Of a DNA stretch of 64,000 bases, positions 1 to 49,524 are shown in pieces. The position numbers and the translations under genes are program-made. Origin of the DNA: Chlorokybus atmophyticus (lineage: Eukaryota; Plantae; Mesostigma and Chlorokybus algae); the NCBI GenBank assembly GCA_009103225.1, contig RHPI01002714.1, positions 4,793 to 68,792 of the forward strand, read 5' to 3'. The notes under the pieces are model-generated. The model was not told where the DNA came from and did no database searches. It worked only from the letters and a program-made list of their open reading frames with translations. How positions within the stretch are numbered: position 1 is the stretch's first letter; each line of letters begins with the position of its first letter.

Positions 1-61
<61 letters not shown>

Positions 62-13350: not shown

Positions 13351-16300
13351 TTCTTCCCTCGCCGCCACGCCCTTTGATCTGGTATTCCACCTCACTGTGT
13401 GTAAACCTTCTTGTTGTGCAGGCTTGCTCTGGGTTGTGTATGCACAAAGTTGAGATGCTTCATTGTCTGTGCATGTGTGTGTGCATATGTGTTTGTGTGT
13501 TGACCAAGTTAGTCAACGCACGGCCAGCCTCTTCTTGCTCAGTCTCTGTTGGCATGCGCCGTCGCCTTCTTCCCTCGCCGCCACGCCCTTTGATCTGGTA
13601 TTCCACCTCACTGTGTGTAAACCTTCTTGTTGTGCAGGCTTGCTCTGGTTTGTGTATGCACAAAGTTGAGATGCTTCATTGTCTGTGCATGTGTGTGTGC
13701 ATATGTGTTTGTGTGTTGACCAAGTTAGTCAACGCACGGCCAGCCTCTTCTTGCTCAGTCTCTGTTGGCATGCGCCGTCGCCTTCTTCCCTCGCCGCCAC
13801 GCCCTTTGATCTGGTATTCCACCTCACTGTGTGTAAACCTTCTTGTTGTGCAGGCTTGCTCTGGTTTGTGTATGCACAAAGTTGAGATGCTTCATTGTCT
13901 GTGCATGTGTGTGTGCATATGTGTTTGTGTGTTGACCAAGTTAGTCAACGCACGGCCAGCCTCTTCTTGCCCAGTCTCTGTTGGCATGCGCCGTCGCCTT
14001 CTTCCCTCGCCGCCACGCCCTTTGATCTGGTATTCCACCTCACTGTGTGTAAACCTTCTTGTTGTGCAGGCTTGCTCTGGTTTGTGTATGCACAAAGTTG
14101 AGATGCTTCATTGTCTGTGCATGTGTGTGTGCATATGTGTTTGTGTGTTGACCAAGTTGGTCAACGCACGGCCAGCCTCTTCTTGCCCAGTCTCTGTTGG
14201 CATGCGCCGTCGCCTTCTTCCCTCGCCGCCACGCCCTTTGATCTGGTATTCCACCTCACTGTGTGTAAACCTTCTTGTTGTGCAGGCTTGCTCTGGTTTG
14301 TGTATGCACAAAGTTGAGATGCTTCATTGTCTGTGCATGTGTGTGTGCATATGTGTTTGTGTGTTGACCAAGTTAGTCAACGCACGGCCAGCCTCTTCTT
14401 GCTCAGTCTCTGTTGGCATGCGCCGTCGCCTTCTTCCCTCGCCGCCACGCCCTTTGATCTGGTATTCCACCTCACTGTGTGTAAACCTTCTTGTTGTGCA
14501 GGCTTGCTCTGGTTTGTGTATGCACAAAGTTGAGATGCTTCATTGTCTGTGCATGTGTGTGTGCATATGTGTTTGTGTGTTGACCAAGTTAGTCAACGCA
14601 CGGCCAGCCTCTTCTTGCTCAGTCTCTGTTGGCATGCGCCGTCGCCTTCTTCCCTCGCCGCCACGCCCTTTGATCTGGTATTCCACCTCACTGTGTGTAA
14701 ACCTTCTTGTTGTGCAGGCTTGCTCTGGTTTGTGTATGCACAAAGTTGAGATGCTTCATTGTCTGTGCATGTGTGTGTGCATATGTGTTTGTGTGTTGAC
14801 CAAGTTAGTCAACGCACGGCCAGCCTCTTCTTGCTCAGTCTCTGTTGGCATGCGCCGTCGCCTTCTTCCCTCGCCGCCACGCCCTTTGATCTGGTATTCC
14901 ACCTCACTGTGTGTAAACCTTCTTGTTGTGCAGGCTTGCTCTGGTTTGTGTATGCACAAAGTTGAGATGCTTCATTGTCTGTGCATGTGTGTGTGCATAT
15001 GTGTTTGTGTGTTGACCAAGTTAGTCAACGCACGGCCAGCCTCTTCTTGCTCAGTCTCTGTTGGCATGCGCCGTCGCCTTCTTCCCTCGCCGCCACGCCC
15101 TTTGATCTGGTATTCCACCTCACTGTGTGTAAACCTTCTTGTTGTGCAGGCTTGCTCTGGTTTGTGTATGCACAAAGTTGAGATGCTTCATTGTCTGTGC
15201 ATGTGTGTGTGCATATGTGTTTGTGTGTTGACCAAGTTAGTCAACGCACGGCCAGCCTCTTCTTGCTCAGTCTCTGTTGGCATGCGCCGTCGCCTTCTTC
15301 CCTCGCCGCCACGCCCTTTGATCTGGTATTCCACCTCACTGTGTGTAAACCTTCTTGTTGTGCAGGCTTGCTCTGGTTTGTGTATGCACAAAGTTGAGAT
15401 GCTTCATTGTCTGTGCATGTGTGTGTGCATATGTGTTTGTGTGTTGACCAAGTTAGTCAACGCACGGCCAGCCTCTTCTTGCTCAGTCTCTGTTGGCATG
15501 CGCCGTCGCCTTCTTCCCTCGCCGCCACGCCCTTTGATCTGGTATTCCACCTCACTGTGTGTAAACCTTCTTGTTGTGCAGGCTTGCTCTGGTTTGTGTA
15601 TGCACAAAGTTGAGATGCTTCATTGTCTGTGCATGTGTGTGTGCATATGTGTTTGTGTGTTGACCAAGTTAGTCAACGCACGGCCAGCCTCTTCTTGCTC
15701 AGTCTCTGTTGGCATGCGCCGTCGCCTTCTTCCCTCGCCGCCACGCCCTTTGATCTGGTATTCCACCTCACTGTGTGTAAACCTTCTTGTTGTGCAGGCT
15801 TGCTCTGGTTTGTGTATGCACAAAGTTGAGATGCTTCATTGTCTGTGCATGTGTGTGTGCATATGTGTTTGTGTGTTGACCAAGTTAGTCAACGCACGGC
15901 CAGCCTCTTCTTGCTCAGTCTCTGTTGGCATGCGCCGTCGCCTTCTTCCCTCGCCGCCACGCCCTTTGATCTGGTATTCCACCTCACTGTGTGTAAACCT
16001 TCTTGTTGTGCAGGCTTGCTCTGGTTTGTGTATGCACAAAGTTGAGATGCTTCATTGTCTGTGCATGTGTGTGTGCATATGTGTTTGTGTGTTGACCAAG
16101 TTAGTCAACGCACGGCCAGCCTCTTCTTGCTCAGTCTCTGTTGGCATGCGCCGTCGCCTTCTTCCCTCGCCGCCACGCCCTTTGATCTGGTATTCCACCT
16201 CACTGTGTGTAAACCTTCTTGTTGTGCAGGCTTGCTCTGGTTTGTGTATGCACAAAGTTGAGATGCTTCATTGTCTGTGCATGTGTGTGTGCATATGTGT

Positions 16301-18842
16301 TTGTGTGTTGACCAAGTTAGTCAACGCACGGCCAGCCTCTTCTTGCTCAGTCTCTGTTGGCATGCGCCGTCGCCTTCTTCCCTCGCCGCCACGCCCTTTG
16401 ATCTGGTATTCCACCTCACTGTGTGTAAACCTTCTTGTTGTGCAGGCTTGCTCTGGTTTGTGTATGCACAAAGTTGAGATGCTTCATTGTCTGTGCATGT
16501 GTGTGTGCATATGTGTTTGTGTGTTGACCAAGTTAGTCAACGCACGGCCAGCCTCTTCTTGCTCAGTCTCTGTTGGCATGCGCCGTCGCCTTCTTCCCTC
16601 GCCGCCACGCCCTTTGATCTGGTATTCCACCTCACTGTGTGTAAACCTTCTTGTTGTGCAGGCTTGCTCTGGTTTGTGTATGCACAAAGTTGAGATGCTT
16701 CATTGTCTGTGCATGTGTGTGTGCATATGTGTTTGTGTGTTGACCAAGTTAGTCAACGCACGGCCAGCCTCTTCTTGCTCAGTCTCTGTTGGCATGCGCC
16801 GTCGCCTTCTTCCCTCGCCGCCACGCCCTTTGATCTGGTATTCCACCTCACTGTGTGTAAACCTTCTTGTTGTGCAGGCTTGCTCTGGTTTGTGTATGCA
16901 CAAAGTTGAGATGCTTCATTGTCTGTGCATGTGTGTGTGCATATGTGTTTGTGTGTTGACCAAGTTAGTCAACGCACGGCCAGCCTCTTCTTGCTCAGTC
17001 TCTGTTGGCATGCGCCGTCGCCTTCTTCCCTCGCCGCCACGCCCTTTGATCTGGTATTCCACCTCACTGTGTGTAAACCTTCTTGTTGTGCAGGCTTGCT
17101 CTGGTTTGTGTATGCACAAAGTTGAGATGCTTCATTGTCTGTGCATGTGTGTGTGCATATGTGTTTGTGTGTTGACCAAGTTAGTCAACGCACGGCCAGC
17201 CTCTTCTTGCTCAGTCTCTGTTGGCATGCGCCGTCGCCTTCTTCCCTCGCCGCCACGCCCTTTGATCTGGTATTCCACCTCACTGTGTGTAAACCTTCTT
17301 GTTGTGCAGGCTTGCTCTGGTTTGTGTATGCACAAAGTTGAGATGCTTCATTGTCTGTGCATGTGTGTGTGCATATGTGTTTGTGTGTTGACCAAGTTAG
17401 TCAACGCACGGCCAGCCTCTTCTTGCTCAGTCTCTGTTGGCATGCGCCGTCGCCTTCTTCCCTCGCCGCCACGCCCTTTGATCTGGTATTCCACCTCACT
17501 GTGTGTAAACCTTCTTGTTGTGCAGGCTTGCTCTGGTTTGTGTATGCACAAAGTTGAGATGCTTCATTGTCTGTGCATGTGTGTGTGCATATGTGTTTGT
17601 GTGTTGACCAAGTTAGTCAACGCACGGCCAGCCTCTTCTTGCTCAGTCTCTGTTGGCATGCGCCGTCGCCTTCTTCCCTCGCCGCCACGCCCTTTGATCT
17701 GGTATTCCACCTCACTGTGTGTAAACCTTCTTGTTGTGCAGGCTTGCTCTGGTTTGTGTATGCACAAAGTTGAGATGCTTCATTGTCTGTGCATGTGTGT
17801 GTGCATATGTGTTTGTGTGTTGACCAAGTTAGTCAACGCACGGCCAGCCTCTTCTTGCTCAGTCTCTGTTGGCATGCGCCGTCGCCTTCTTCCCTCGCCG
17901 CCACGCCCTTTGATCTGGTATTCCACCTCACTGTGTGTAAACCTTCTTGTTGTGCAGGCTTGCTCTGGTTTGTGTATGCACAAAGTTGAGATGCTTCATT
18001 GTCTGTGCATGTGTGTGTGCATATGTGTTTGTGTGTTGACCAAGTTAGTCAACGCACGGCCAGCCTCTTCTTGCTCAGTCTCTGTTGGCATGCGCCGTCG
18101 CCTTCTTCCCTCGCCGCCACGCCCTTTGATCTGGTATTCCACCTCACTGTGTGTAAACCTTCTTGTTGTGCAGGCTTGCTCTGGTTTGTGTATGCACAAA
18201 GTTGAGATGCTTCATTGTCTGTGCATGTGTGTGTGCATATGTGTTTGTGTGTTGACCAAGTTAGTCAACGCACGGCCAGCCTCTTCTTGCTCAGTCTCTG
18301 TTGGCATGCGCCGTCGCCTTCTTCCCTCGCCGCCACGCCCTTTGATCTGGTATTCCACCTCACTGTGTGTAAACCTTCTTGTTGTGCAGGCTTGCTCTGG
18401 TTTGTGTATGCACAAAGTTGAGATGCTTCATTGTCTGTGCATGTGTGTGTGCATATGTGTTTGTGTGTTGACCAAGTTAGTCAACGCACGGCCAGCCTCT
18501 TCTTGCTCAGTCTCTGTTGGCATGCGCCGTCGCCTTCTTCCCTCGCCGCCACGCCCTTTGATCTGGTACTCCACCTCACTGTGTGTAAACCTTCTTGTTG
18601 TGCAGGCTTGCTCTGGTTTATGTATGCACAAAGTTGAGATGCTTCATTGTCTGTGCATGTGTGTGTGCATATGTGTTTGTGTGTTGACCAAGTTAGTCAA
18701 CGCACGGCCAGCCTCTTCTTGCTCAGTCTCTGTTGGCATGCGCCGTCGCCTTCTTCCCTCGCCGCCACGCCCTTTGATCTGGTACTCCACCTCACTGTGT
18801 GTAAACCTTCTTGTTGTGCAGGCTTGCTCTGGTTTGTGTATG
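13351..18842. repeat. 216-bp tandem array, 25 full units plus a partial unit
   Basis: Unit starts at 13351+216k (13567 ... 18751); units almost identical, with the few variants near the array edges. Confidence 0.97.
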
Positions 18843-19277: not shown

Positions 19278-20298
19278 GTCAGCAGCAGTTTTCACCTTGT
19301 ACATAGCTGCTCTATTAATGTCTTGCTGTTGAGGTTCCAGTAGGCCCCTAGCTGCTCGATCAGTGGGCCATAAGACCAGTTCCAATAGGCCAGTGGCGTT
19401 GTATACATGTGCTTCCTGCCTGCCTGCAATGAGAACCTGCTGTTATAGCGGCTGCTGTCTGTGCATACGGGGTACTCCATCACACGCATGTCTTGCGTTT
19501 TCTGTACGCAACATGCTTACATGCGCAGTCTGTTACATGTCTAATGCATGCGCATATGCACGCCACATTGTATACAATGTGGCGTGCATATGCGTGCAAT
19601 AGCGGCGCCCCAAATCAACACACACCGTGCACCAGCCGTCACATTAACCAGCAACACCAGGCACAACCACAAAAACTACAGCTAGGGGGGCTGGTCTAGT
19701 GCAAGTGCTGGAATTGTATGTGCACTTGTATCACGCACAAAATTACACAACCTTCACATGTGCAACTACTGTCTTTGTTTCTATGTGGTTGTTCTATAGT
19801 GACGGCCTATACCTGGTTGCTGCATATAGGACTACCTGGTGCAATTCATACCCTCTACATGCATTTTCACAGATGGATCGATTGCACCCAATTTGCAATA
19901 CATCATTCAATGACCCTTGCCCAGTACAGCGCCGCCTGACGCGCGGTACAGAGTTGCTTCAATGAATAGTGCACGGTTGTAGGGTTTAGAGTTGAGCACC
20001 TGCAGTAGTGCAACATTTCTTGCGTGACGTGGTCTGAGGCGGCGGTTGTGGCGGCGGTGGTGGCGGCGGGTGGTGGCGGCGATGTGAGCGGGAGGCGGTG
20101 TGGTTGCTATGGTGGTGTACTGCAAGCCTTTTCGCATCGGTGCTCCAACCGCTTTGTGTAGATCTCTTGCAGCTTCATAGGCAGCTTGGTAGGGTTTGAA
20201 GAATTCGCAAGCCAGGTGTAGTGCATGCCGCGCTCCTCTTTGTTTGCGCTTGTTTTGCTGACCGCTCTCAAGGCCCATTCTTGCTCATGCTGATCGTA

Positions 20299-20622
20299 GG
20301 GGGCAGCCTCGTGCGTAAGGCCCCTGCATGCTCAGGCTATGTTGCAGCCAATTTTGTCTTGCATGTCGTCGTTTTTACGCCTCTGTTCATGCTGACCTCA
20401 TGGGGCAGCCTCGTGCGTAAGGCCCCTACATGCTCATGCTAACCTCATGGGGCAGCCTCGTGCGAAAGGCCCCTGCATGCTCATGCTGACCTCATGGGGC
20501 AGCCTCGTGCGTAAGGCCCCTGCATGCACATGCTGACCTCAAGCAAACCTTGTCTTGCATGTTGTCAATTCACGCCTCTGTTCATGCTGACCTCATGGGG
20601 CAGCCTCGTGCGTAAGGCCCCT
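20299..20622 (+). repeat. Five copies of GGGGCAGCCTCGTGCGTAAGGCC (plus orientation); three are in a ~48-bp minisatellite
   Basis: Copies at about 20300, 20402, 20449, 20497 and 20597. Confidence 0.9.
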
Positions 20623-21013: not shown

Positions 21014-23317
21014 ATGGAGAGTCAAGTTGGATCAATTCTGCGGCGGCAGCTCAGCAAGCTGTGTGACAAGCAGGCAGCAGCTGCGAGTATTGACCTTGGG
21101 AACTTTGTCGGAGAACCTGAAGCTGAAGTGGGCACATCAACGGGTCGTGCATCTACTGGTGGTCGTTGGGAGTCTGGTCTACCTCCTCCACAACCGGGCG
21201 ATGAGGCGGAGCTGATTGGGCTGCTGCTGCATGAGACAAAGCTGCGGCTCTTTGACGCCTATGCTGATGGCAACTGCTTCTACTCTTGCATTGCCCAGTC
21301 GCGCCCTCCCGTCAACGCTGCGTGCCTGGAACGCGTGGGCGCAATCAAGAACGAGGCTTTCTGGCGAAGCATCGTGCTGGACAACGGCAACGAGCTACAT
21401 ACGAGAGATCAAGCTGCCAAATTGCGCAAGATGTGTGCTGACCAGGTCACCGTTCGTTGGTTACGGACGTATCGCAATTACGGGGCCTCTGGTGACATGG
21501 GCGAGGACTACGAGAAGGCCGCCAAGAAATTCCGGGTAACAACGGTTCTCGATGGAAAAGATGAAGGTGATGCAGCTAATGTTGCTCTGAAGAAAGTGAT
21601 CGGTCATGAGGGTGTTTATGCGGACCAACTGCAATTGGCGCTGCTGGCGCACACACTGGGCATTCGCATTGGCACCGTGCAGCTCAAGGAGGTTGGTGAC
21701 TGCAAGTACATCCTAGAAGCGGAGGACAAGGGGGTACTCAGCAAAGGGGATGGCGGGAGGTATTATAAACCTGATGACAAAGGAAAGCTGCAGTATATTA
21801 AGCTTGTGGTGCTGATCGGCGAGGATGTTCAGAAAGTGGCTGGCCATGTGATTATTGGCAACACAGACGCGAGCAAGGCCTGCGCGCATTACATGTCTCT
21901 CTTGGCGATGCGAGTGGTAGGCTCTCATGTCAGCTCTGTGACATGCCACCAGAAGTCTTGCGCTACCTGTACCTTGATGGTCCTCCACAATCAGCACCCA
22001 GTGCCAAATCGGCGCCACTCCAGGCCTACATTTTCAAGTAGACCCCCTGTGCAATCGCAAGCTGTGTGTGTGCAAGAGGCTGAGGCCCAGGCCAAGGGAG
22101 AAGGCAAGGTTGAGACCCAGGCAATCGCGAAGGTCCAAAAGCCGAAGCTAAGGATGGGTCCAGAGTGCATGAAGAAGGTCGAGGCCAGCTTGAAGCAGCA
22201 AGCACAGGCCAAGGCCAAGCAGGCGGGCGAGGCGAAGACCAAGGCTGATGCTGAAGCCAAGGCCAGGCAGGAGCAGGCTGAGACTGAAGCCAGGGCCAGG
22301 CAGGAGCAGGCTGAGGCCAAGGCCAGGCAGGCGAGCGAGGCGAAGACCAAGGCTAATGCTGAAGCCAAGGCCAGGCAGGAGCAGGCTGAGACTGAAGCCA
22401 GGGCCAGGCAGGAGCAGGCTGAGACTAAAGCCAGGGCTAGGCAGAAGCAGGCTTTGGCTGAAGCCAAGGCCAGGCAGGAGCAGCTTGAGGCCAAGGCTAA
22501 GCAGGCACAGGTCAACCAAGAGGTTGAGGTGGAAGTCCAGAATCAGGCAGAACCCATGAGCCCAGCTGATGGACAGGTAAGCACTGTCATGCTGTCTGCG
22601 TGCAAGAGCAAGTGTGGAGTTGCACAATGTGGCACCGAGCTTGATGTTATGCAGGGCAATGAGAGCTTTTCTGATGAATCTGGCACATCAACCAGTAGTC
22701 TTTCCTCTGGTGTTCCTCGTCGTGCCACCACAAGCAAGAAGCGCAAACGCCGTCGTACTCGCAGCCGAGCTCCTGCGCAGATAGACAACACCCCTGCCGA
22801 CGCTTTTAAGAAGCTGCGCCATCTGCGGCAGGCAGGTCGCAAAGTGGAGGAGTTTTACGCGCAGTTCGAACATCTGTGTATGGTTGCCAACGCGACAGCG
22901 CTGCAGGTGGATGATGCCCTCAAACTACAGCTTTTTTTCAAGGGGCTTAGGAAAGGAGTGCGCAATTGCGTCGCGAAGGGTCCTTTGAACCAGGATTGGC
23001 GGGATGACCAGATCAACGAGCTTGTGCGCACTTGCAAGCAAAACGAAATCGAGCTGAATGAGACTTTGCAAAAGCACCATCTCAATCGAGAGAATTTTTC
23101 CGCATGCAAAGCAAACCCCATGGAGATGTTAAAGTTGCAAAAACGCGAACACATTGATGATCGGCGGCAAAGCAAGAAACTGGCCAAGAAGCGTCAACAT
23201 GAGCGTGAGCGAGCAGTGATAGGTCAGCAGCCAACACTCGAGCAGCAGGAGCAGCTGAAGCAGCAACTCTTTCAGGAGCGTGAGCAGAAGCGGCAGCAAC
23301 GGAAGCAACAGTGCTAG
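21014..23317 (+). CDS. OTU-like cysteine protease + A/E/Q/K repeat coil + retrotransposon Gag-like domain
   Basis: YADGNCFYSCI (Cys box), YADQLQL, AHYMSL (His box); EAKARQEQAE repeats; AFKKLRHLRQAGRKVEEFYAQF..LFFKGL Gag-like segment. The true start and introns are unresolved. Confidence 0.75.
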   Translation: MESQVGSILRRQLSKLCDKQAAAASIDLGNFVGEPEAEVGTSTGRASTGGRWESGLPPPQPGDEAELIGLLLHETKLRLFDAYADGNCFYSCIAQSRPPVNAACLERVGAIKNEAFWRSIVLDNGNELHTRDQAAKLRKMCADQVTVRWLRTYRNYGASGDMGEDYEKAAKKFRVTTVLDGKDEGDAANVALKKVIGHEGVYADQLQLALLAHTLGIRIGTVQLKEVGDCKYILEAEDKGVLSKGDGGRYYKPDDKGKLQYIKLVVLIGEDVQKVAGHVIIGNTDASKACAHYMSLLAMRVVGSHVSSVTCHQKSCATCTLMVLHNQHPVPNRRHSRPTFSSRPPVQSQAVCVQEAEAQAKGEGKVETQAIAKVQKPKLRMGPECMKKVEASLKQQAQAKAKQAGEAKTKADAEAKARQEQAETEARARQEQAEAKARQASEAKTKANAEAKARQEQAETEARARQEQAETKARARQKQALAEAKARQEQLEAKAKQAQVNQEVEVEVQNQAEPMSPADGQVSTVMLSACKSKCGVAQCGTELDVMQGNESFSDESGTSTSSLSSGVPRRATTSKKRKRRRTRSRAPAQIDNTPADAFKKLRHLRQAGRKVEEFYAQFEHLCMVANATALQVDDALKLQLFFKGLRKGVRNCVAKGPLNQDWRDDQINELVRTCKQNEIELNETLQKHHLNRENFSACKANPMEMLKLQKREHIDDRRQSKKLAKKRQHERERAVIGQQPTLEQQEQLKQQLFQEREQKRQQRKQQC

Positions 23318-23465: not shown

Positions 23466-24278
23466 TCAGTAAAAAGGAGGGTAATCGACATTTAAACCTA
23501 TCGCTTCCAGCAACAGCCTGCCTACATGTTCAGAGTAAGTAGGTGGAATAGCATTCTTGATTTCCGATTCTGCATCCATCCACTCCACCTGCATGGCAGA
23601 CTGCCACCCTGCAATCGTACCACGGCAAGATGCTTGGCCGTATACCGGGTAAATTTGCCTCTCCCCAGGTAGCAACTGCCGGCGCTGCTCCGGGTGGGTG
23701 GCCAGCTCTCCAAGTGCAGAACCAGTGTGGTTGCATTCTAAGTCTGAGCGCATTGGAGGGTTTGTCTCGAAGATGCGATGGCGATACACATCCAACTTGA
23801 ACATGCTGCCACACAGCTTCAGGTGAGTTGTCATGTGTCTTGACGCGCCTGCGACATTCTCTATCACCCATGCCTTGCCGCTTAACTGCAACTTGGCTCT
23901 TATGGGGTCAATCAGGTTGACGTGATCCCATCGATATCCGTATGCGGACCGTTGTGTCGTGGGAATGGCTCCACTAAGAGCTTGGCATGGAGGACTTGCC
24001 CACACTGCATCGTATGCTGACAGGTCAGCGTCCATTGCATCCATCTGGCAGATGTTGAATGGGTATGCCGGCTGTGGCTTAATGTCTATACCCTCAACAT
24101 CAAACCCAGCCCTGTATAGACCCGTAGCAACGCCACCGGCACCACAAAAGAGATCCAATGCGCGTGGCCTGTAATGTCTACCGCTTGAGTCGCATGGTGT
24201 GCGAGTTACGAGAAGGGGTGGTGGCCTGGGCCAACGATCGAGCTCGCGACCAGGCAAGTCTTGCAGTCTTATACATCT
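23466..24278 (-). CDS. Compact DNA (cytosine-5)-methyltransferase, bacterial/phage-like (E1 copy)
   Basis: Motif I LDLFCGAGG, GIDI, motif IV SPPCQ, motif VI ENV, motif VIII RHRIF, motif X NAIPP..EHVG; no intron inside the domain. Confidence 0.9.
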   Translation of the reverse strand, partial: RCIRLQDLPGRELDRWPRPPPLLVTRTPCDSSGRHYRPRALDLFCGAGGVATGLYRAGFDVEGIDIKPQPAYPFNICQMDAMDADLSAYDAVWASPPCQALSGAIPTTQRSAYGYRWDHVNLIDPIRAKLQLSGKAWVIENVAGASRHMTTHLKLCGSMFKLDVYRHRIFETNPPMRSDLECNHTGSALGELATHPEQRRQLLPGERQIYPVYGQASCRGTIAGWQSAMQVEWMDAESEIKNAIPPTYSEHVGRLLLEAIGLNVDYPPFY

Positions 24279-24684
24279 TTAACCACCAACTCGAACCATC
24301 ACTGCAACGACATCTTGCATGTTGTAACCCTCACGCACAGCTGCGATGTTCCAGTTTTTCAACAAGATGTGGTGCAGCCGCGGATCCTCATCGTAATCGT
24401 CGTACTTGATGGTATGTTTTCCCAAGCCACATGTTTTACTGAGCCAGTGCTTGCGTGAACACGCACATACATCACATACTCTGCATTATTTAGACACATG
24501 TACCTGTGTTGGCATTGAAAGTGATCATGCGGCCTGCATACCAGGTGCTCATTCCAGGCCAGTATACCACGACGCGGCTTGCTACCAAAGACTGCCCCTC
24601 ATCAACAATCTCCTTTCGCCACGCAGTTATTATCGCGGTATCGTTAACTGCGTCAACTACTGCTACATTCCCCTTCAACATCAA
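24279..24684 (-). CDS. Tudor/Agenet-like domain split by an intron (E1 copy)
   Basis: RVVVYWPGMSTWYAGRMITFNANT|G...KHTIKYDD; cag|gtacat donor at about 24503; the second exon is in the same frame as the methyltransferase, separated by one TAA (24281-24279). Confidence 0.7.
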
Positions 24685-24737
24685 AGAGTGAGTTGCTTAC
24701 GTATGAGAGCGCTGTTTGTGCGCCAGGACAGGACAGT

Positions 24738-25160
24738 TCAACTCACTTTGTTGTTGTGATCATCTTGGACTGTGGACTTGCCGCGACCGTTGCGCGCGAG
24801 CTGACGTCGCACCACATCACACTCCTGCCCATCCTTATATGCTCTAGGCCGGGCCCAAGGCAGGTGATCCATGGGCTCGCCGTCCCACTCAAACTTGGAA
24901 AGCGAGCATTGCAGGCAAGTGCATTCCTCGACAAAGAAGTTTGGCTTCATGCATTTTGCTAGAAGCCTGCACTGCCTCACATTATCTCCCCGGGCCTTAT
25001 GGTGCCAGCAGGCTTCATAGAAGCCATACTGCTCACTGTACAGCTTGCACTTCTCTTCATGCTGTTGCAGCCGTTTCAAGTTGCCGATTTCTATCCAAGT
25101 ATGCTCTGCAGAAACTGCACACCTTGACGCCGCGCATATTGCCGCCACGCAACTTACCAT
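24738..25160 (-). CDS. Unrecognised Cys/His-rich domain (E1 copy)
   Basis: ACWHH-x8-CRL..C..PNFF..CTCLQCS..FEWDGEPM..PW; clear homologue at 49838-50413. Confidence 0.7.
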   Translation of the reverse strand: MVSCVAAICAASRCAVSAEHTWIEIGNLKRLQQHEEKCKLYSEQYGFYEACWHHKARGDNVRQCRLLAKCMKPNFFVEECTCLQCSLSKFEWDGEPMDHLPWARPRAYKDGQECDVVRRQLARNGRGKSTVQDDHNNKVS

Positions 25161-25426: not shown

Positions 25427-28400
25427 ATGAGCTACAATCGCAGGTGTTTCTGCGATGATTGCCAAGGGAGCAAAGTGTTCACACACAAGCACATCACTAG
25501 GGCCAAAAACCATGAGTACCATGGCACAAGGATGTGGATGGGCACTTCTAAAGCTGTTGAACCGCAATACCGTGATCTTCTCGAACCCGATGAACTTGAA
25601 GAAGCTGACGCTGTTATTGCTGCTGCATCCTCGCACATGCTGTCAGGTACAAGAGTAATGTTCCTGAGTTGGTGTACTTCATCAACAGGCTGTCTGATTA
25701 CCAAGCTTGTCTGCTTCAGATGATGCTGTCCATCACACTGAAACACTTCATGCATGGAACTACGCTGCTGAACAACTGCACCCAGCCACGCCATTGCAAA
25801 CGAGTGTTGCATCCCATGTCAATGTTGCACATCACATGCGCCCAGCAGGTACGACGTATTCTAATTGCAAGTTGATTGCTTACGTCATTGTCCATGTGCC
25901 AGTGCATTTATTCGCGTTGGCAGGATGTCATCCGTGTAATCATGAGGAACAGAGCGAATTGCACCCAGCATTCTCTGGAAGTGAGCATCCTGTATTGCGA
26001 GGACATCAAGGTGCCAGAACTTCAAAATACACAGTTCCGAACGAGCATGATATGCCAGCGCACTCCCCCTCAACCGCTGATCAAGTACATGCGGAGCAAG
26101 TTGATGGTGATGGCGTAGAACAAGACTCCGATACCTCTGTGGAGTCGCAGCAGTATGACACTCATGGTGATGACGATGCAATGCTGCTTGACAAGGTGAA
26201 TGCTGCGCTGTTGGACAATGCAAGCAACCCTATCGTTGCCGGCTCTCGTACAACCCCCTTGGGCATTTCCATGCTGCTATTGGTTCTCGCTCAGCTACAT
26301 CGAATACCCTTCAACTTCATGAACAAACTGCTAAGGTTGGTGGACAAGAGGTTTGCAAAATTATACAAAACACATTCTGCAAAGACATCAATGTCCAATT
26401 TCCAATTGAGCTTGACTTTGTGTGCCAGGTTGGTGCGTGATGTTGTTTTGCCCAAGGAGAATCAGATGCCAGGCAGCATGCAAGAGCTACTGAAATGCGT
26501 TGCAAGCCTCAACATGGGCTTCCACGCGTATGACGCCTGTTGGTGTGACCAGATGGTGTATTATGGCCGACATGCCAACAGGAAATTCTGCAAAGGTCAG
26601 CTATTGCAGCATTTCTTGTGTGATTGAGTTGTCATGGGATCACCTGTCAGCATGCAAACTTCCTATGGCCTGCAGTCTGCAAGGCTCCTCGCCACCGCAA
26701 TATTGGAGGTCGACAAGTTCCTTGGAAGATTGCACGTTACTTTGACGTGCCTGCTGCTTTGAGGTCTCTTTACCTTAAGCCTAGTGTCGCTTTGGAGATT
26801 ACAGAGCACACCAATCGCAGTGAGGATGGGGTTATACGATCCATACACGGTATGTATATGGCAGTGTGGATTGACAAGTTGATGCCCAATGTAGCCTGAA
26901 TTCTTATATGTTTATTATTATTCATGTGGTTGCTGCTGTCAGACTCGCCAATGTTCAAGCATACAGAAGAACGCTACATCCGGTTTATTAAAGAACCGCG
27001 TAATGTGCGGCTGGCAATGTTTATTAACGGGATGAGCCTTTTCAAAGATCCGCACAAAGGTAGTGATTGTGCCTTTTACCTGTGCTGTCATTGCAGTGTG
27101 GAAATTCACAGTTGGCATTGATTGAGGTGTTTGTGGACTTGCAGGGACTTATGAATTTTGGCTTGTCACAATCTCTGTGCTGAACCTGCCCATTGCCAGA
27201 ATGCACAAAACCGACACTACCTTTCTAGCTGCGGTGATACCTGGTCCCAAACAGCCAGAGAATCTACAGGCCTATCTCAAGCCAATCATTGACCAATTGG
27301 GAACCCTTTGGGAAGGTATGGTTTCAATATAGTTTGAATAAGCCAGCTCTCAAAAAATTGGACATGCTCTCAAACTGCTCTGGATTGGAATGTGTAGGGC
27401 ATCTCAGCTGCTGATGTTTGTTGTAAGCATCGACATATATGACAGCCACCGCGACGAAGTTTTCCGGTGCAGATCTATCTTGGAGATTGTAATCCATGAT
27501 TACCCAGGTACGCAAGCAGCAAGTGTTGGCCATCAGTGTCCATGAATGTACTATCTGACTGGTATGGCAACCATGTTTGCCTTCTCTGAAACATGTAATG
27601 ATGGTTGCGCAGCTCTGGCAAAAGCAGCTATGTAGATGAGATGGCTCATGGAGCCAGCTTTGGCTGTTCCAAATGCGAGTGCAGTGGAGAACATGTTGAA
27701 CTCCTTAAAAAGGTGATTTATCAAGGCTACCGCCGGTACTTACCAGATGACCATCCCTACCGAGTTGATGAGCGTTGGCCCCAACCAGAACACAGACCTC
27801 CACCTCCCATGCGAACTGCAGAAAGTGTGTACCGGTGAGCAATCAATCAATTGACATAGCTGAACGTAGCTATGTCAATCAAGCATCACCAATGGATGCC
27901 ATGTGATCAGGTACGCCATGACATCCCGCAACAGCAGCGACCACTTCATTCCAAGAAACATCCTTCAAAGTCCTCCAGAATCCTTGGCCTAAGCTGTTTT
28001 CACGACCTTCCCTATTGGATGCCTTTACAAAAATCTATAAAAGGTCATGTGATTGGCCCTATGCACATTTTTGCCAATCTCGCAACCAATTTGGCCAATC
28101 TGCTTGCTGGATTGCGCGACAGCAATGAGACTTGAGAAGATCTGCAGCAGCAAGGTCGTATGCCAGAACTCTGGCTACAGGTATTGCAGGCTTATGCGAC
28201 ACTTGATGACTGCCTGCCAACTCGTGTGACTTTGTGATGATGCGTTGCAGACAGAGATGATGGCGAAAGACGGAAAGGAAGTTGCAGTTAAGGTCAAACC
28301 TCAGGCTCCATGGGCAATCACGGATGCAGGGCTGGTTGAGCAATTACTCTCAGGCGTGAGGGTTCCAAGCATTTTACACACACAACTCTAAGCTGCAATC

Positions 28401-29950
28401 TTTCACCAAGCATTTAGGTGAGACAACCACCATGGTTCTCAACTGCGAGCAAATCAACTCAGTGTCCTTGCATTGCACATTGTGTCTACTTAACAATCTG
28501 ATGTAGTGAGCACACAGGCTCGATGAAATCGCACGACAAGCACATCTTGTGGTCCGTGATTTTCCAGTACGTGCTGTGCTCTGCTCATGACATTGGAGAA
28601 GATCAGAAGAAAACAATCCTCAAACTTTGCGACATCTATCAGCGGCTGACTGCATTGGAAGTGAAGCAGTCACACCTTGAAGAACTGCAGGTTAGGGCTT
28701 TAACTATACCTTCCATGTGTATGCTTAGCTTCTACAGGTTGCATGACTTGCGTTATTCATCGCAGGTGCTGGTGCATGAGGCACAGTCTGAGGTGGAGCT
28801 GCTCTTCCCGCGGACTTCACTCACAATGATGCTGCACCTCCTTGGCCATCTACCAGAGCAATGCATGTGGCTTGGTCCGGTGCGCGATCACTGGGAGTGG
28901 GCCGACGAACGATTTATGCAGTGGGTGAAGCGCATGATTTTTGCCAAGCAGCATGTGGAAGCAAGCATCTGCAAAAGGCAAGTCTGGGCCAACTAAAAGT
29001 TGCATGCAACCTTTTTTCGTACTCTCGTTCTTTGACTTGTGTTAAATGCAAGTTATGTCTGCAGATACTCCATCCATCTCATGTTGAACACTTACATGGA
29101 CACCTTGAAGAGGCTTTTCGTCGGCATCAGTTTGCGATCGGGCAAGGAGCGAGATGATGATGACTATGTCCTCTGCGGGCGCAGACACCGTGTTGAGTGT
29201 GAGAAAGATAGCAAGATCAGGCAGGAGCTGGAGTGGTGGTTGGCCGAAAATGACGATGAGTACAGGCAGCTAAAAGAGTAAGTTGCTTTAGCAATCGTTG
29301 TTTGGTACGCAATGTCCCCTGCATATTATGAGTCCACAATCGGTTGGTAAACAGAGAATTCAGTTGGGCTGTTCAAAAACGGCGGAAGACACGCGAAAAG
29401 GCCCAAGCACAAGGGAATCTCGTGACCAGTGACATGGAGCACATGATTGAGCTGCATCATTGGCGTGGACCTGATAGGGAGCTTACATAACACGAGATGG
29501 AGTTGTTGAGTGGTCCCATTTTTCCAAAGTACATCATGAGGTACTACAGAGCGCGCTACAAGGACATTGGCCAGTTCAGAGCAGAGGACACTGAGAAGAA
29601 GCTCCGCACTATGGACTGCGGAGTGTTTACCGTTGGGCGTGACTCAAATGACCCAACCAAGAAGATCCACTCGTATGGCAGGGTGCAGTCTTTTTATGTT
29701 GTCGTGGTAGCCGGTTGGGAGTACCAACTCCTCAGAGCGAGGTGGTACATGAGCAACCAGGTGCAGCACATGGGAGGCTTTGCAATTATGAGAAAAGACA
29801 AGCCCCGCTTTGCAGAACAAACCTACCTTGATTGCAACCTAGTTAGTAGGTGTGTTGCAGCAGTTTTTGCGAATTGATGACTGAGTGAGATTGGGTGATA
29901 CATGTCCTTGCTGGCAGGTCAAGGGCCAGTGGTTTGAGGGTATTAACCCG
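25427..29950 (+). pseudogene. CACTA/EnSpm Tnp2-family transposase, multi-exon (CxCxxC N-terminus, Tnp2 core, DUF4218-like and DUF4216-like regions), inactivated
   Basis: CFCDDC; HAYDAC; RYFDVPAALRSLY; PRNVRLAMF; LNLP..AVIPGPKQPENLQAYLKPIIDQLGTLWEG; HDYP; YRRYLPDDHPYR; MKSHD; MLHLLGHLPEQ..GPV..W..ER; YGRVQSFY..LRARWY. Stops and a frameshift are present. Confidence 0.9.
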
Positions 29951-30978: not shown

Positions 30979-33900
30979 GTGGACATCGATGATGACATCA
31001 TGGTGCTGGACGGGTCAGGTGCTAAAGTTGAGGCGTCAACACTTGTGCCTCTGTTCATTTACCCTAGTGCAAATGCACGTGATGCGGTGCCACTGTTTGA
31101 AGCGGACAGAAAGTTGCTGGACGGCAGACAGGAGCTCAACGACACCGTGCTCCACTTCTTTTGCAGGTATGAGCCTTGCGTTGTTGGTGTTGTGCAGCTG
31201 TGTCATGTATGTGTCACGCACGCGCAGATATAAGGAAGAAGAGGTCGTGGGCAGAGCTGACGGCATTCACGTGAGGCTGTTCAACCCGCACTTCTACACC
31301 AAGATTGTGCATTGCCATGAACAACATAACTGGCACAATGGCAATCACAGGATAGATAGGTGGGCGAAAGATCCGTTTTCCAAGAACTTGCTGGCAGCAA
31401 TTGTCAACCCACACAGCCGGTGAGAGTGAAGCCAAGTTCTCGCACTGCAGTGCTGCTGTACTTGCTCGCATGGACTCACTTTGAAGTCTGCATGCCACAG
31501 GACTCACTGGAGTCTGCTGCTGGTGTGCAATCCTGGAGGGAAACTTGAAAGCAACACGCCGCCCTTGATCGTCCATCTCGACTCCCTTGGTCTACATCGC
31601 AACGTCGACGGACCAATGCGCGCGTATCTAAACTATATGTGGGGCAGGAAGCATGGAAGTGAGTCGCAACAGCGCTTCTCTCCCGCAAACGTCCCGTTAC
31701 TTGATCCACAGGTAGGACATATTGTTTTGGCCTGGTGATGAGGTCACGCCCTGTAACGGGAGCAATAATAATAGGGGTATTATTGCTACCTAAATAACAC
31801 ATTTTGTATGAATAAGTATTTAAATATGCTTATTTATACCTCTTTTCTACGGTTCCTCGCTTATTAAAGGCTATGATGCTTTATCATAGCTTAAATAAGT
31901 CCCAATGGGTGTAGAACCGCTTATTCAAGCCTATTTAGTGTCACATTTGATATAATGTGATCACTATCTCGTTAGGTACCTTACGATAGGTATCTTTGGA
32001 TAGGTACCTTATCGATAGGTACCTTATCTGAGCTGTGATTGGCTCACGCTAGATTTCCTAACTACCCTATCTGTAGGGTCGATGTCTAGTTGTGAGTTAA
32101 TTATCGAGAGGTATATAATTGATATACTCTTGATATAAACGGTCACATCAATCTGATGTGGGGACTTTTCAGTTCTCTGCTCAGGGGCGGCCACGCCGTC
32201 GAAAGGCTTGTCATAGGCGGTGTGGGTGTTGGGGTAGAGGATTGAAGGGGCATCACCGGCGACGGTGGTGCTGTTACATTGGTATCGGAGCTGGGGGGTG
32301 ACGTGGGTACTTATAGGGGGCGGCGACCTGCTTTCGGCCAATCAGAAGCGTCGGCGGCGGCCTCCTATTCGTCCACGCAGCCCAAGCTTCAAGTTCGCTT
32401 CCCTGCGCTACCTCCACGTTGAAGCCACCTATTAAAGAGGCGGCCTCTCCACGTGTGAGGTACCATCACACGTCGGTGACTTGCCTGCTTGCCTGCTTGT
32501 CAGCTGCTTGCCAGGTGCTTGCCAGGTGCACGTGTGTACTTTCATGCACATCACACAGTGGCTTGCCAGTGCACTATCATTACTTGCAGTGATTGCCTGT
32601 CATTGCTTGCAGTGATTGCCTGTCATTGCATGCGGTGATTGCTTGTCATTGTGCTTGCCAGTGCATGTCACAGTTGGTCACCGTGCGGCTTGCCTGTTGC
32701 ATGCCTGTGGCTTGCCTGTTGCATGCCTGTGACGTACCTGTGACCTGCCAGCGGCTTTGCCGGGTCGTTTGACCCGGGTCCGTAAGTTCCAAACCAAACT
32801 GTTCCCAAACCCTCCCCCTCTGGCTTCGGCCTGGAGATCGGGACTTGGTTAGGACAGTTGTGGGGAGGTTCTAGGACAATCTGTTCCCAAACCCTGTTAG
32901 TCTGAAACCCTCCCCCTCTGGCTTCGGCCTGGAGATTGGGACTTGGTTGAGGACAACACAGGGTTAGGACATTCTGGTCCCACTCAGACTTGTTCTGTTT
33001 GGTGACACTCCAGATTCAACCTTTCCTATTTTGGGACTGGTTTGGACTCTGTTTGGGACTTTTACAACTTGGGGTCATTTTGATCCTCTCGTTGAACCTG
33101 GTCCATTGGTGAGGTTCTCACCATCCCATTCTGCCTGTTTTGCAGGCAAATGGAAGAAAACTCGGTGCCCACCTCAAAAGGGGAGAGCTCGGAAAAAGAG
33201 CAACCTTCCCGTGAGGAGGAATTTCCATCCATGGAAGATATTCCGAATCCGGATGATGCACCTGATGAGTCTCAAGCTGCTAAAGCTGCGGAAGCTTCAG
33301 TGGATGATAGATCACCTTCTATATTCCCTGAGTTTTCTATTCGCATGACACAGCAGGACTTGATGGAGCATTTCCTTAGCACCTATGATCAGGACCCTCG
33401 TGAGGCAATTGTCTCATTCGTGAACTTTCTCTTCCTATTGGCAGAAAAAGTTTCAAAGCTCACCACCTTTATGGGGCGAGATTGGGAGGGGCAGATGGGT
33501 GAAGGCAAACGTGTTCTGAATATGATCGAGCGTCTGCAGCGTGCTGACGGTGGTCCACCTGTTCAAGCACTTGCTCGTCCTGCCGAGTTTGTTCCCAACA
33601 AGCAAGCGGCCATCTTCGACTGGCTTGTGAAGTTGCGACACTATGTCAACTCCCTTCACATTTCTGAGGAGGGGAAATTGCGTGTAGCTGAGTTGCTGAT
33701 CCCAAACGATGCTTTGGCAGAGTGGTACCGCCGTAAGCAACGGGATACCAACCTCGGGCGGGAAGTAAATCAGTTGTGCTTTTTCATGGAGCAGCGCTAT
33801 GGTGGCGCAGATCCTGCCCAGGTTGCTCGCAACCAGCTGCACAACCTGCGTCAGAACGGGCGTCCGGTTCAGCAGTATATCCAGGATTTTCAGTCGTTTG

Positions 33901-36900
33901 TCAGCAAGATCAATGCTGGCAAACTACCTATCAGTGATGCTGATCAGCTGGATATGTTCAGGCGTGGCTTGGACACAGATCTCGTGCAGCATGTGGCCGT
34001 CAACCCCGCGAGTTTGCAAGAGTGGGCCTCGACGGATTTACCAATGCTGATGCAGATGGTTGCTGCTGTGGACAGTGTAAAACGCTCTCACGCCAACATG
34101 CAAACCACGGCAAAAGAGGCAGCCCCGGTTTCAGCTGCAAAGCGCCCGGCCACTGGCAACAAACCTTTTGTGAAAAAGGCGAAACCATCTCATCCTGCTG
34201 GCCCCTACAATGCGGCCAAATCCATCATCACTTGCAGTTTCTGCAAGAAGACAGGTCATGGGGAGGCTACGTGCTATGCAAAACAGAATGCACAGAAGGC
34301 CAAGCAGCAGAGAGAAAAGAAATAGGAATTGTCCGTGGTTGGTAGCTTAGTCGAGCAGAACGACTTTAAAAACTCTGTACTTCTTGATAAAGTTTCCTCT
34401 CTTTGCGATGTATCAGATGTATGGACTGATATGAGCACACCACCTGTGTTGAGAAATGCAAACGGTTGTGTTTTAATCAATGTTCCATTCTCTGAATTAG
34501 TAACTGCTGTTAAGCACTTACACGAGTTGCAATTACAACATGCTGTCACTGCATGTGTAGTTATCCCTCGATATCATGGCCCGTGGTCGCGATTGTTGAA
34601 AGGGGGAGAAGTAATCATGCAACTCTCACGCAAAGATACAGGAGCTTCACCGTTGCAAGTGATCTTTATCAAGTCTGCTACCAATCACGGCACTCCGACA
34701 TTAGCTACATTTGATGGTCACTCAGTGCCACTCAAATGGAGATTTGAGAGTCAACTTATGGGTACACCATGTACAGCATTGATTGATACTGGTGCAAACC
34801 ATAACTTTGTTGAACATGCTTGGGTGAAACGTAATAACATTCCTTTCACACCAGTCACGTCATATGTACGTGCTGCTGGTTCCACTCTCAATGCAATGGG
34901 AGAGGTAAAAGGGCGTTTTGTTATTAATGGCCATATAACCCGACCAGCCTTCATCGTGGTGGATATTGGTATCCCCGGGGTGGATGTTGTTTTAGGGGAA
35001 CAATGGCACACTGAAGCAGGTTTACAATCAGACTCTCGAGCCAATACGTGCACCCTTCGTAAAGGGAAACGTAGGATGACTTTAACAGCATCTGTACTCG
35101 CACGTATACCTCGCGATAATGTTCCGCTCCTCTCTGCTATGCAATTGAAACGTTGCATGCGTAAACGTGAGGAAGTATACTTACTGCACTTACGACAGGT
35201 GGAAACACCTGCTGAACAGGCTATCAGTGACCCTGTGGTGCAGTCACTTACGGAACAATACGCAGATGTATTTCAGGATGAACTCCCAGAGTTGCCTCCC
35301 GATCGAAACATACATCATACCATTCCGTTAGAGGAGGGGGCAAAGCCACCTTGGCGGCCTATATACAGGCTAAGTCCCTTAGAACACGCGGAGATGGAAA
35401 AACAGCTCAAAGAGTTATTGGACAAAGGTTTAATAACAAAGAGCATATCTCCTTTTGGTGCACCAATTTTGTTTGTGCCCAAAAAGAATGGCAAGCTACG
35501 CATGTGTATTGATTACCGTGCGTTGAACAAGGTCACTGTGAAAAACAGATACCCTTTGCCTCGGATTGATGATTTGTTTGATAAGCTGTCAGGTGCAACA
35601 GTGTTCAGCACGCTGGATTTGACCAGTGGTTATCATCAAATCAAAATCCACCCGTCGGATATACAAAAAACTGCATTTCGCACCCCACTAGGACACTTTG
35701 AGTATAAAGTGTTACCATTTGGGTTAACAAATGCACCGGCTACATTTCAGACAGCAATGAACGCGGTATTTGCTGATGAATTGTACAAGTTTGTACTGGT
35801 ATATCTAGACGACATTATTGTGTTCAGCAAAACCCGGGAGGACCACCACAAACATGTGGAATTGGTTCTAGCTAGATTACGTGAACACAAATTCTATGCC
35901 AACCTGTCCAAATGCAACTTTGCAAAGGATGAACTACCCTTTTTAGGGCATGTGATTGGCAAAGAAGGATTGAAACCAGATCCTCAAAAGGTGTGTGCGG
36001 TAAAGGATTGGCCACCACCCAAGGATGTACATCAGTTACGTGCTTTCTTGGGGCTAGCCAATTATTTCCGCAAGTTCATGCGAGCATATTCTGGCATGGC
36101 AAATCCTTTAACATCTTTACTAAGAAAAGATGTTAAATTTGTGTGGACGGAGGCACACGAGGTTGCTTTTACACGCATTAAAGATGCATTAACACAAGCC
36201 CCTGTGTTAGCCTTCCCCGACCACACCAAGCCTTTTGTGGTGATCAGTGATGCTTCCACCATTGGGTGTGGAGCAGTCCTTCTACAAGATGACAGACCAT
36301 GTGCATATGAAAGCAGAAAGTTCATTCCTGCTGAACGTAATTACACAACCACTGAGCAGGAATTGCTCGGGGTGGTGCACGCGCTGCGCACATGGCGTTG
36401 CTACTTGGAAGGGGTGGAGTTTTCAGTGATTACTGATCACAACCCGCTCACATTCTTTCATACGCAACAAAATCTGTCGAGGCGGCAAGCTAGGTGGAAT
36501 GAATTCATTTCTCGTTTCACTTTCACTTGGCAATACCGTCCGGGTCGCACCAATGTGGCGGATCCACTAAGTCGCAGCCCTGCTCTTTTGGCACTTACGC
36601 GCTCTCGAAGTACGCGTAATGTACAACAGCCTGAAGATCCTTTCTTAAAGGAAGTGTCCACAGGTTATAACTCAGATGATTGGTTTAGCAGTCAAACCAA
36701 CTTGCAACAGCTTACTGCTGTTAGCAATCTGTGGTATAAAGGGGAGCAGTTGGCAATTCCCAACTCGGGCGACTTGCGTAAGCAATGCTTACATTCAGTG
36801 CATGACCCGCCGTATGCTGGGCATTTGGGGAAACACAAAACACTCAAATCTGCGCAACAGTTATACTGGTGGCCGTCAATGTCAGCTGACGTGGATCAAT

Positions 36901-43140: not shown

Positions 43141-43145
43141 CACGA

Positions 43146-43401
43146 TACCATCAAGGGCGATATCTGACTGGATCCGGAAGCCCTGATGTATCTAAAGACC
43201 GGAAATTACCCACCAGCTGCAAGTTTGCTAACAAAGGACCGCGTTTGACGCCGGTCTCAGTGCTACGATTGGAATCAAGACAAGGTACAAGATAATACAA
43301 GACGGCACCATAAAAATGGTGCCACCACTATTCGACAGAGAGGCGGTTGTGCGCAAGCTGTATTATTGGGACATTTTGGGGTGAAGCGCACACTGGCGCT
43401 A
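43146..43401 (+). pseudogene. Old gypsy relic, part 2 (start of the integrase zinc-binding region)
   Basis: Ends GHFGVKRTLAL exactly at the E2 insertion site. Confidence 0.75.
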
Positions 43402-49520: not shown

Positions 49521-49524
49521 TTAC

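Follow-up and report, generated by a model that had tools for sequence, protein, structure and literature searches.

A Tudor-linked C5 DNA methyltransferase gene beside two different DNA transposases in Chlorokybus atmophyticus: a likely transposon cargo

Transposons are as a rule on the receiving end of DNA methylation; might some of them carry a gene that writes it? The question is raised by a 64,000-nucleotide (nt) stretch of the Chlorokybus atmophyticus genome (contig RHPI01002714.1), called the window throughout, in which a cassette combining a Cys/His-rich domain, a Tudor domain and a C5 DNA methyltransferase occurs twice, each time close to the transposase gene of a DNA transposon. We refer to the locus with a Tnp2/EnSpm-type transposase as E1 and to that with a Plavaka transposase as E2; the study comprises this 64-kb window and these two copies only. 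The reading that we regard as probable is that the cassette gene, usually together with an OTU-like gene, travels as cargo of CACTA/EnSpm–Plavaka elements, has long been under selection in at least two lineages and would serve chromatin-guided DNA methylation.

One spliced gene at two loci

On our splice model the cassette is, at both loci, a single gene of four exons encoding the Cys/His-rich domain, the Tudor domain and the compact C5 DNA methyltransferase (Table 1). The initial annotation had listed an ordered trio on each element; the order and the homology hold, but the three members are exons and domains of one gene rather than three genes. Joining the E2 exons across three GT-AG introns of 145, 75 and 80 nt yields an uninterrupted frame of 475 amino acids (aa), and this copy looks intact. 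E1 has the identical four-exon layout, with 487 aa and introns of 74, 82 and 75 nt. The intron within the Tudor domain, previously described as occupying the same position in both copies, does interrupt one and the same Gly codon of the alignment, in phase 1.

A two-sequence profile built from the first Tudor exon of E1 and E2 matched PDB chain 7de9_A with E = 3.9e-7, which upholds the earlier Tudor call; the E2 exon alone matched the same chain with E = 5.5e-4. The Tudor domain of 53BP1 was a weak third match of the profile, and Pfam returned no match for the Tudor exons of either copy. By PDB look-up, 7DE9 is the Tudor domain of Arabidopsis PDS5C (also PDS5C/RDM15) bound to H3K4me1. The match covers the first half of the fold. 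The WP and Y of 7DE9 recur at the aligned positions of the window domain, and E1 and E2 both conserve the W of WP and a WY pair, which align with aromatic residues of 7DE9. The second Tudor exon bears the expected (I/V)x(Y/F)DDxD strand. Judged by these alignments, the assignment to a Tudor fold of the PDS5C type is sound, and methyl-lysine binding is putative. PDS5C itself is cohesin-associated and is not a methyltransferase.

The Cys/His domain is conserved between the copies as H-x3-C, CWHH and four more Cys, including a CxCxxC group, followed by FEWxGEPM..W..P. It offers enough ligands for two zinc sites and is probably zinc-binding. The domain matched nothing in Pfam even at E = 10, nothing in the PDB as a single sequence or as a profile, and no homologue was found in a search of 5.8 billion proteins, in IMG/VR or in JGI metagenome contigs. 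Its AlphaFold model (predicted local distance difference test score, pLDDT, 51.5) was too poor for use. We do not claim a chromodomain-like reading of the FEWxGEPM..W..P segment, the sole basis of which was a match to CBX7 at E = 1.7.

The catalytic part comprises ~260 residues with almost no target-recognition region; motif VIII is separated from the C-terminal motifs by just ~40–50 residues. E1 scores 25.4 bits against Pfam PF00145 (cut-off 22), in a match that spans only positions 3–119 of the 324 in the profile, and both copies match the PHROG family phrog_363, ‘DNA methyltransferase’ (E = 4e-26 for E1 and 6.8e-22 for E2). Motif I, the S-adenosylmethionine-binding FxGxG motif, reads FCGAGG in E1 and FCGGGD in E2. 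SPPCQ (motif IV), IENV (VI), RHR (VIII) and NAIPP or NAVPP (X) are present in both copies, and the P, C, E, N, R and H of the catalytic motifs are invariant in an alignment of seven sequences. A large-database search returned 3431 homologues, mostly of 200–240 aa and 43–47% identity, which are short prokaryote and phage proteins; one lies in a prophage-like setting with ERF and integrase genes, and 79 viral contigs in IMG/VR bear such a methyltransferase gene.

In databases the enzyme is matched best by those of phage, prokaryote and giant-virus-like type; in the PDB, DNMT1 reaches only E ~0.6. By Pfam, neither copy has the companion domains of DNMT1, DNMT3 or DNMT5 (RFD/BAH, PWWP/ADD and SNF2). 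As judged by these comparisons, the enzyme is not a canonical eukaryotic DNMT1, DNMT3 or DNMT5.

Ancestry and age of the methyltransferase

The catalytic domain was placed by an exhaustive profile search of representatives and a maximum-likelihood tree of 60 sequences, which is unrooted and drawn from selected best matches. E1 and E2 are sisters (support 100/93), nested in a clade (98/96) of methyltransferases whose variable region holds an inserted methyl-CpG-binding domain. This clade adjoins another, giant-virus-like one with a different large insert (100/99), and both split from 44 compact enzymes (100/99). The sister of E1 and E2, with moderate support (87/81), is P0124, encoded on a gene-dense 29-kb metagenome contig together with topoisomerase II, the small subunit of ribonucleotide reductase, an aquaporin and a U-box gene. 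P0012, of the second clade, is encoded on a contig of 245 kb, next to the genes for a family B DNA polymerase and for an RNA polymerase subunit with an intein. From this gene content we infer that both contigs are giant-virus-like.

The label ‘phage-like’ given to the enzyme at the outset is therefore right for the fold and the ultimate family, on the strength of the phrog_363 match, the short homologues and the IMG/VR contigs, but not for its closest kin: in the tree the nearest relatives are the enzymes with the methyl-CpG-binding insert, one of them, the sister, on a giant-virus-like contig, and the phage enzymes lie farther off. The compact phrog_363 enzymes of phages and prokaryotes (~210–240 aa) share with the window genes the core, the motif order, the near-absent target-recognition region and 43–47% identity; the window enzymes differ in standing outside the compact clade, in the sister clade with virus- and eukaryote-like members, and in their eukaryotic N-terminal domains. 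The descent of the catalytic domain would thus run from a phage or prokaryote family, through a lineage found on giant-virus-like contigs, to the genes in the window.

The enzymes with the methyl-CpG-binding insert (P0001, P0122 and P0124–P0126) and the P0012 clade have a VDYPP-type tail and motifs like those of the window genes, which the phage enzymes lack. Their genes differ from those in the window in being single-exon, in lying on gene-dense contigs, in having an insert in the variable region and in having neither Tudor nor Cys domain; E1 and E2 are without the insert and have their N-terminal domains instead. None of the methyltransferase relatives examined has a Cys or Tudor extension, and the methyltransferase is all that the window has in common with the contigs of the relatives that have the methyl-CpG-binding insert. 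Long relatives were considered as full-length Tudor fusions and rejected, being prokaryotic tandem double methyltransferases; P0121, P0123, P0127 and P0131 are such prokaryote-like head-to-tail fusions of two compact domains of the E1/E2 family.

Two of the relatives deserve a remark of their own. P0001, the best single database match, which has the methyl-CpG-binding insert, lies 65 bp downstream of an open reading frame (ORF) resembling 2OG-Fe(II) oxygenases on a contig of 1.65 kb (L001, ORFs 2–541 and 606–1568), possibly a writer/oxidiser pair. The called start of P0124 (L088, 9940–10000) excludes motif I; as the frame runs upstream through the motif I sequence, the start is either miscalled or non-ATG. 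Farther upstream the frame reaches a stop codon after a short MNMNT peptide.

How old is the pair? By BLASTP the methyltransferases of E1 and E2 are 46% identical (E = 7e-78), the Cys domains 37% (E = 7e-18) and the Tudor domains 28% (E = 2e-4); over the whole protein 184 of 454 aligned residues (40%) are the same. Within the methyltransferase, identity at codon positions 1, 2 and 3 is 0.55, 0.64 and 0.33, and the same base is kept at 16 of 45 four-fold sites within identical residues. Because synonymous sites are saturated, these identities were used in place of the ratio of non-synonymous to synonymous substitution (dN/dS). With synonymous sites saturated, the protein conserved and the ~790-nt methyltransferase ORF open in both copies, the pattern is that expected of long purifying selection and not of recent duplication or neutral decay. 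The view that the copies are clearly related, well diverged and not recent is thereby confirmed, third codon positions being just 33% identical.

These data bear on one alternative, namely that the methyltransferase and OTU-like genes are remnants of an endogenised giant virus or another mobile element, into or beside which the two transposons inserted later, so that the module would be viral and not cargo. The nearest methyltransferases do lie on giant-virus-like contigs, and eukaryotic genomes are known to contain giant-virus insertions with DNMTs (PMC11244446). However, the gene is interrupted by three short introns, which fall into one size class with the ~33–60-nt gaps among the exon pieces of the neighbouring transposase, and the gene's fused Tudor and Cys domains are of eukaryotic type and absent from the viral relatives. 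No further shared or virus-like gene lies round either copy, and saturated synonymous sites combined with a conserved protein suggest long residence under selection rather than decay. We consider a viral remnant very improbable.

Transposases, OTU-like genes and element ends

Is the gene transposon cargo? At E1, four consecutive pieces (26924–27838) match positions 8–44, 59–107, 103–138 and 142–207 of Transposase_21/Tnp2, one of them above the cut-off (30.4 against 28.6 bits), and 28523–28996 matches DUF4218 with 41 bits (cut-off 27). At E2, 46132–46722 matches Plavaka (PF18759) with 76.7 bits (cut-off 26.3; E = 2.5e-21); earlier transposase exons probably start near 45580, and the C-terminal ORF (47001–48482) has no detectable homologue. 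The types assigned earlier, Tnp2 and Plavaka, are supported by these matches. Since Kojima (2025, PMC12730594) groups Plavaka broadly with EnSpm, as elements that have CA..TG ends and duplications of 2–5 bp, the description of both elements as members of CACTA-superfamily lineages is reasonable.

When every stop-to-stop ORF of E1 was compared with the rest of the window by tblastn, only the cassette and the OTU-like gene proved common to E1 and E2; the two transposases are thus not alike. The methyltransferases are each other's closest relatives though the transposases differ, in agreement with the initial annotation, which had placed the same module beside different transposases. The cassette starts 547 bp from the first transposase ORF at E1, in divergent orientation, and ends 203 bp from the Plavaka stop codon at E2, in convergent orientation.

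The homologous OTU gene reported near each cassette is present, in that the two ORFs are 28% identical (BLASTP E = 4e-17). Their identity as OTU proteases is weakly supported and their arrangement with the cassette differs. Both conserve a DGNCFY loop with a candidate AHF/AHY motif downstream; the match to Pfam OTU (PF02338, E = 0.074) is below cut-off, and a profile of the two matched nairovirus OTU chains in the PDB with E ~0.02. The top PDB matches of this profile, named ‘Cake’, are designed repeat proteins and were dismissed as spurious. The AlphaFold model has a pLDDT of 35. At E1 the OTU-like gene is downstream of the cassette and convergent with it; at E2 the two share a strand, the OTU-like gene being upstream and separated from the cassette by an extra ORF of 322 aa. 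In the E1 ORF the OTU-like part is followed by a tandem repeat rich in Lys, Ala and Glu (108-bp unit at 22206–22435) and, near the C-terminus, by a weak Retrotrans_gag-like segment (aa 594–646, E = 5.7e-4); the E2 ORF has neither. OTU domains are a known accessory of the Ginger1 and Helitron DNA transposons (PMC2836005), so the OTU-like gene is ordinary for a transposon and may be unrelated to methylation.

At E2, two palindromes of ~45 nt that are related to each other bracket the transposase, the cassette, the 322-aa ORF and the OTU-like gene. Their alignment score of 38 exceeds that of all 200 shuffles. The left one sits among eight copies of the motif AATGGTAC, of which there are 10 in the window against 1.7 expected. 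A second, weaker inverted pair lies round E2 at 43206–43227 and 53385–53407. Plavaka elements have defined termini and a target-site duplication of 2–3 bp (PMC12730594); the published TGT..ACA or CATCA..TGATG ends are at neither candidate pair. The right side of E2 is less certain because an assembly gap begins at 54829, between the OTU-like gene and the right palindrome. On the evidence of adjacency, to which the flanking palindromes add at E2, the cassette is likely, though not proven, to be transposon cargo.

Alternatively, both copies might come from an ordinary family of host genes, in which a Tudor-bearing orphan DNMT serves the host itself; they would then only happen to lie among repeats, next to transposases that are unrelated insertions. 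No proven transposon termini enclose the cassette, the region is packed with repeats (two long terminal repeat (LTR) elements, a satellite and a 3.3-kb duplication), and eukaryotic genomes commonly contain orphan DNMTs that are of foreign origin (PMC12344493). A host family does not readily account for two ~40%-identical paralogues that each lie 203–547 bp from a transposase with an OTU-like gene within ~2 kb, for the related palindromes that enclose the whole E2 set, or for the presence of OTU domains, known as a transposon accessory (PMC2836005). On balance we find this alternative decidedly unlikely.

The initial annotation went further and proposed exchange of the module between CACTA lineages. 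This is one of two readings, as exchange cannot be told from two captures of paralogous genes. A stronger version of the cargo reading, in which a methyltransferase derived from a giant virus was fused to a histone-methyl reader, shuttles from one family of cut-and-paste transposons to another and works in the host, is doubtful, with a small but real chance of being right. If it were true, transposons would be a source of chromatin-guided de novo methylation and a route by which 5-methylcytosine (5mC) systems spread or are re-acquired.

Table 1 Features of the two loci (positions in the window)
Feature	Position	Strand	Basis or remark
E1 cassette	23466–25160	minus	ORF calls and E1/E2 alignment
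E1 methyltransferase ORF	23466–24257	minus	
E1 Tudor ORF	24490–24684	minus	
E1 Cys domain ORF	24738–25160	minus	
E1 exon 1, Cys/His-rich domain	24747–25160	minus	aligned with E2; donor GTGAGT at 24746
E1 exon 2, Tudor first half	24504–24672	minus	E1+E2 profile against PDB 7de9_A; phase-1 donor in Gly codon
E1 exon 3, Tudor second half	24335–24421	minus	homologous to E2 segment HRIVFDDGD
E1 exon 4, C5 methyltransferase	23466–24259	minus	PF00145, phrog_363, alignment; exon start inferred
E1 OTU-like cysteine protease ORF, 767 aa	21014–23317	plus	DGNCFY, similarity to E2 ORF
E1 Tnp2/EnSpm-type transposase	25707–29877	plus	many short exons, ORF-piece gaps ~33–60 nt; end undefined
E2 cassette	48686–50413	minus	ORF calls and E1/E2 alignment
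E2 methyltransferase ORF	48686–49474	minus	
E2 Tudor ORF	49471–49875	minus	
E2 Cys domain ORF	49838–50413	minus	
E2 exon 1, Cys/His-rich domain	50039–50413	minus	alignment and splice model
E2 exon 2, Tudor first half	49737–49893	minus	7de9_A match
E2 exon 3, Tudor second half and linker	49525–49661	minus	preceded by 75-nt GT-AG intron, phase 1 in Gly codon
E2 exon 4, C5 methyltransferase	48686–49444	minus	phrog_363, PF00145, alignment
E2 ORF, 322 aa	50941–51909	minus	between cassette and OTU-like gene; no counterpart in E1
E2 OTU-like cysteine protease ORF, 437 aa	52073–53386	minus	DGNCFY, similarity to E1 ORF
E2 Plavaka transposase	46132–48482	plus	Pfam exon 46132–46722, 493-aa C-terminal ORF 47001–48482
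E2 left palindrome, ~45 nt	45163–45210		inside cluster of eight AATGGTAC motifs (44981–45196)
E2 right palindrome	54993–55038		looser cluster of one-mismatch AATGGTAC copies at 55015–55149

Possible role, known cargo and surroundings

From its domains we infer that the protein methylates cytosines in DNA de novo and is anchored to methylated histone tails. In the mechanism that we propose, the transposon would encode a protein of ~480 aa composed of the Cys/His-rich domain, the PDS5C-type Tudor and the compact C5 methyltransferase. The Tudor domain, perhaps with the Cys domain, would dock the enzyme on nucleosomes bearing a particular methyl-lysine mark, and, once docked, the enzyme would methylate cytosines close by de novo, CpG being the most likely site. 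The transposon, rather than the host, would in this way set the methylation of itself or its surroundings. Several outcomes are compatible with such an activity: a lowering of the element's own activity and cost, a timing of transposition, or the pre-empting of a harsher host response.

CpG is the likely target because the sister enzymes carry a methyl-CpG-binding domain and because CpG is depleted, and TpG/CpA in excess, in the window. The observed/expected ratio is 0.68 for CpG and 1.45 for TpG/CpA, and the skew is strongest in the satellite described below (0.57 and 1.8). These values fit CpG methylation in the genome but are not proof of it.

A number of observations weigh against the cargo and methylation reading. 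The splice sites of both copies were read from sequence alone, and two acceptors in the models read AAG and GAG instead of CAG or TAG. The acceptor of the E1 Tudor intron (24422–24503) reads GG, not AG, and E1 is therefore probably a defective, decaying copy. E2 falls marginally below the PF00145 cut-off (20.7 against 22 bits), and in its motif I an Asp replaces the last Gly. The Cys–Tudor–methyltransferase architecture was found in no other genome or contig by profile, 5.8-billion-protein, IMG/VR and JGI metagenome searches. At E1, where a CACTA/EnSpm element would be expected to have CAC...GTG terminal inverted repeats and a short target-site duplication, no inverted pair stood above chance on either side, including beyond the nested LTR element, and no duplication was found; at E2 there are two different candidate pairs of ends, neither with a target-site duplication. 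The window is rich in transposons, so part of the adjacency could be chance, and the CpG depletion is window-wide, not particular to E1 and E2.

Some of these points suit a further alternative, in which the copies are dead or non-enzymatic, or the enzyme acts on RNA as DNMT2 does, and there is no DNA-methylation module today. The E1 acceptor is lost, E2 combines a variant motif I with a sub-threshold Pfam score, and the authors of a survey of orphan DNMTs regard their substrates as hard to predict (PMC12344493). Yet E2 retains its uninterrupted 475-aa frame, the catalytic PC, ENV and RHR are intact in both copies, the codon-position identities indicate purifying selection over most of the divergence, and the methyl-CpG-binding domain of the sister enzymes points to DNA. 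We think it unlikely that the module is dead or directed at RNA.

Among known systems, methyltransferases borne by mobile elements have been described in retrotransposons: SymbioLINE-Dnmt and SymbioDIRS-Dnmt3 of Symbiodinium and a charophyte retrotransposon lineage encode DNMTs (de Mendoza et al. 2018, PMC5890265), which methylate CG de novo (PMC5890265). They are the nearest precedent for the proposed activity. As in the window, a C5 methyltransferase belongs to a mobile element, catalytic positions are conserved in old families and self-methylation has been proposed (PMC5890265). Those genes are captured, host-derived and within the coding region of the retrotransposon (PMC5890265), whereas the window genes are separate and spliced, lie by DDE transposases, are fused to Tudor and Cys domains and come from a phage/giant-virus lineage. 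The sole element with a reverse transcriptase nearby is an independent nested insertion with a 5-bp duplication of its own, so the cassette is not a retrotransposon-encoded DNMT.

Another parallel is the TET/JBP cargo of fungal elements, and here the comparison drawn by the initial annotation is apt: TET/JBP genes occur in many lineages of DNA transposons, including Plavaka, EnSpm-like, Kyakuja, hAT7, Harbinger-like and Helitron elements (Kojima 2025, PMC12730594; Iyer et al. 2014). In both cases one DNA-modification gene stands separately by the transposase in several unrelated lineages. TET/JBP oxidises 5mC, whereas the window enzyme is predicted to write it; if our reading is true, the cassette is the writing counterpart of the TET/JBP cargo. 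The TET-bearing elements moreover have defined termini, target-site duplications and many copies, against two copies, with candidate ends at E2 only, in the window. Further cargo described in DNA transposons includes SET (histone modification) and VANC (a block to silencing). Reader domains fused to transposons have also been described, and orphan and giant-virus DNMTs are generally without companion domains (PMC12344493). We found no description of a Tudor–methyltransferase gene carried by EnSpm or Plavaka in the literature searched, coverage of which was incomplete, with Repbase reports outside it. Relative to the cargo described, what is new is a Tudor–methyltransferase gene beside cut-and-paste transposons; the transposon-borne DNMTs that we found described are only those of retrotransposons.

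If the reading is true, a gene of this kind would open to direct experiment the question of why a mobile element should itself methylate DNA. The trail from phage through giant virus to transposon bears on how orphan DNMTs enter eukaryotic genomes, and an enzyme of ~260 residues, if active, may serve as a small methylation tool.

The surroundings of the two loci are themselves rich in repeats. The window gave no tRNA or Rfam match, and its TGTAA and AATAAA signals were uninformative. The right side of E1 holds a nested young Ty3/gypsy chromovirus (31752–38731). Its two LTRs, 527 bp long and 99.6% identical, have TG..CA ends, its target duplication is 5 bp long (CGCCC), and both its gag (33150–34325) and its pol (34329–38057, with a C-terminal chromodomain) are open. 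Upstream of E1 lies a 62-nt palindrome (19541–19602) with a perfect core of 22+22 nt. An older LTR-like pair (40563–40974 and 42723–43141, 80% identical), round an ORF of 297 aa, ends 65 bp before one of the candidate left ends of E2. A direct repeat of 3.3 kb with 97% identity occupies the ends of the window (34–3365 and 60650–64000), possibly as a segmental duplication or as two copies of a large repeat. The 216-bp satellite (13350–18842) comprises 25.4 copies with 99% matches and is flanked by the 21-nt motif GGCAGCCTCGTGCGTAAGGCC, five minus-strand copies of which lie on the left (11270–12618) and five plus-strand copies on the right (20302–20619). No sharp termini were found for an element holding the satellite. 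The clusters of GGCAGCCTCGTGCGTAAGGCC have the look of subterminal inverted repeats, and the satellite may lie inside a further element, perhaps a non-autonomous one, to which they belong.

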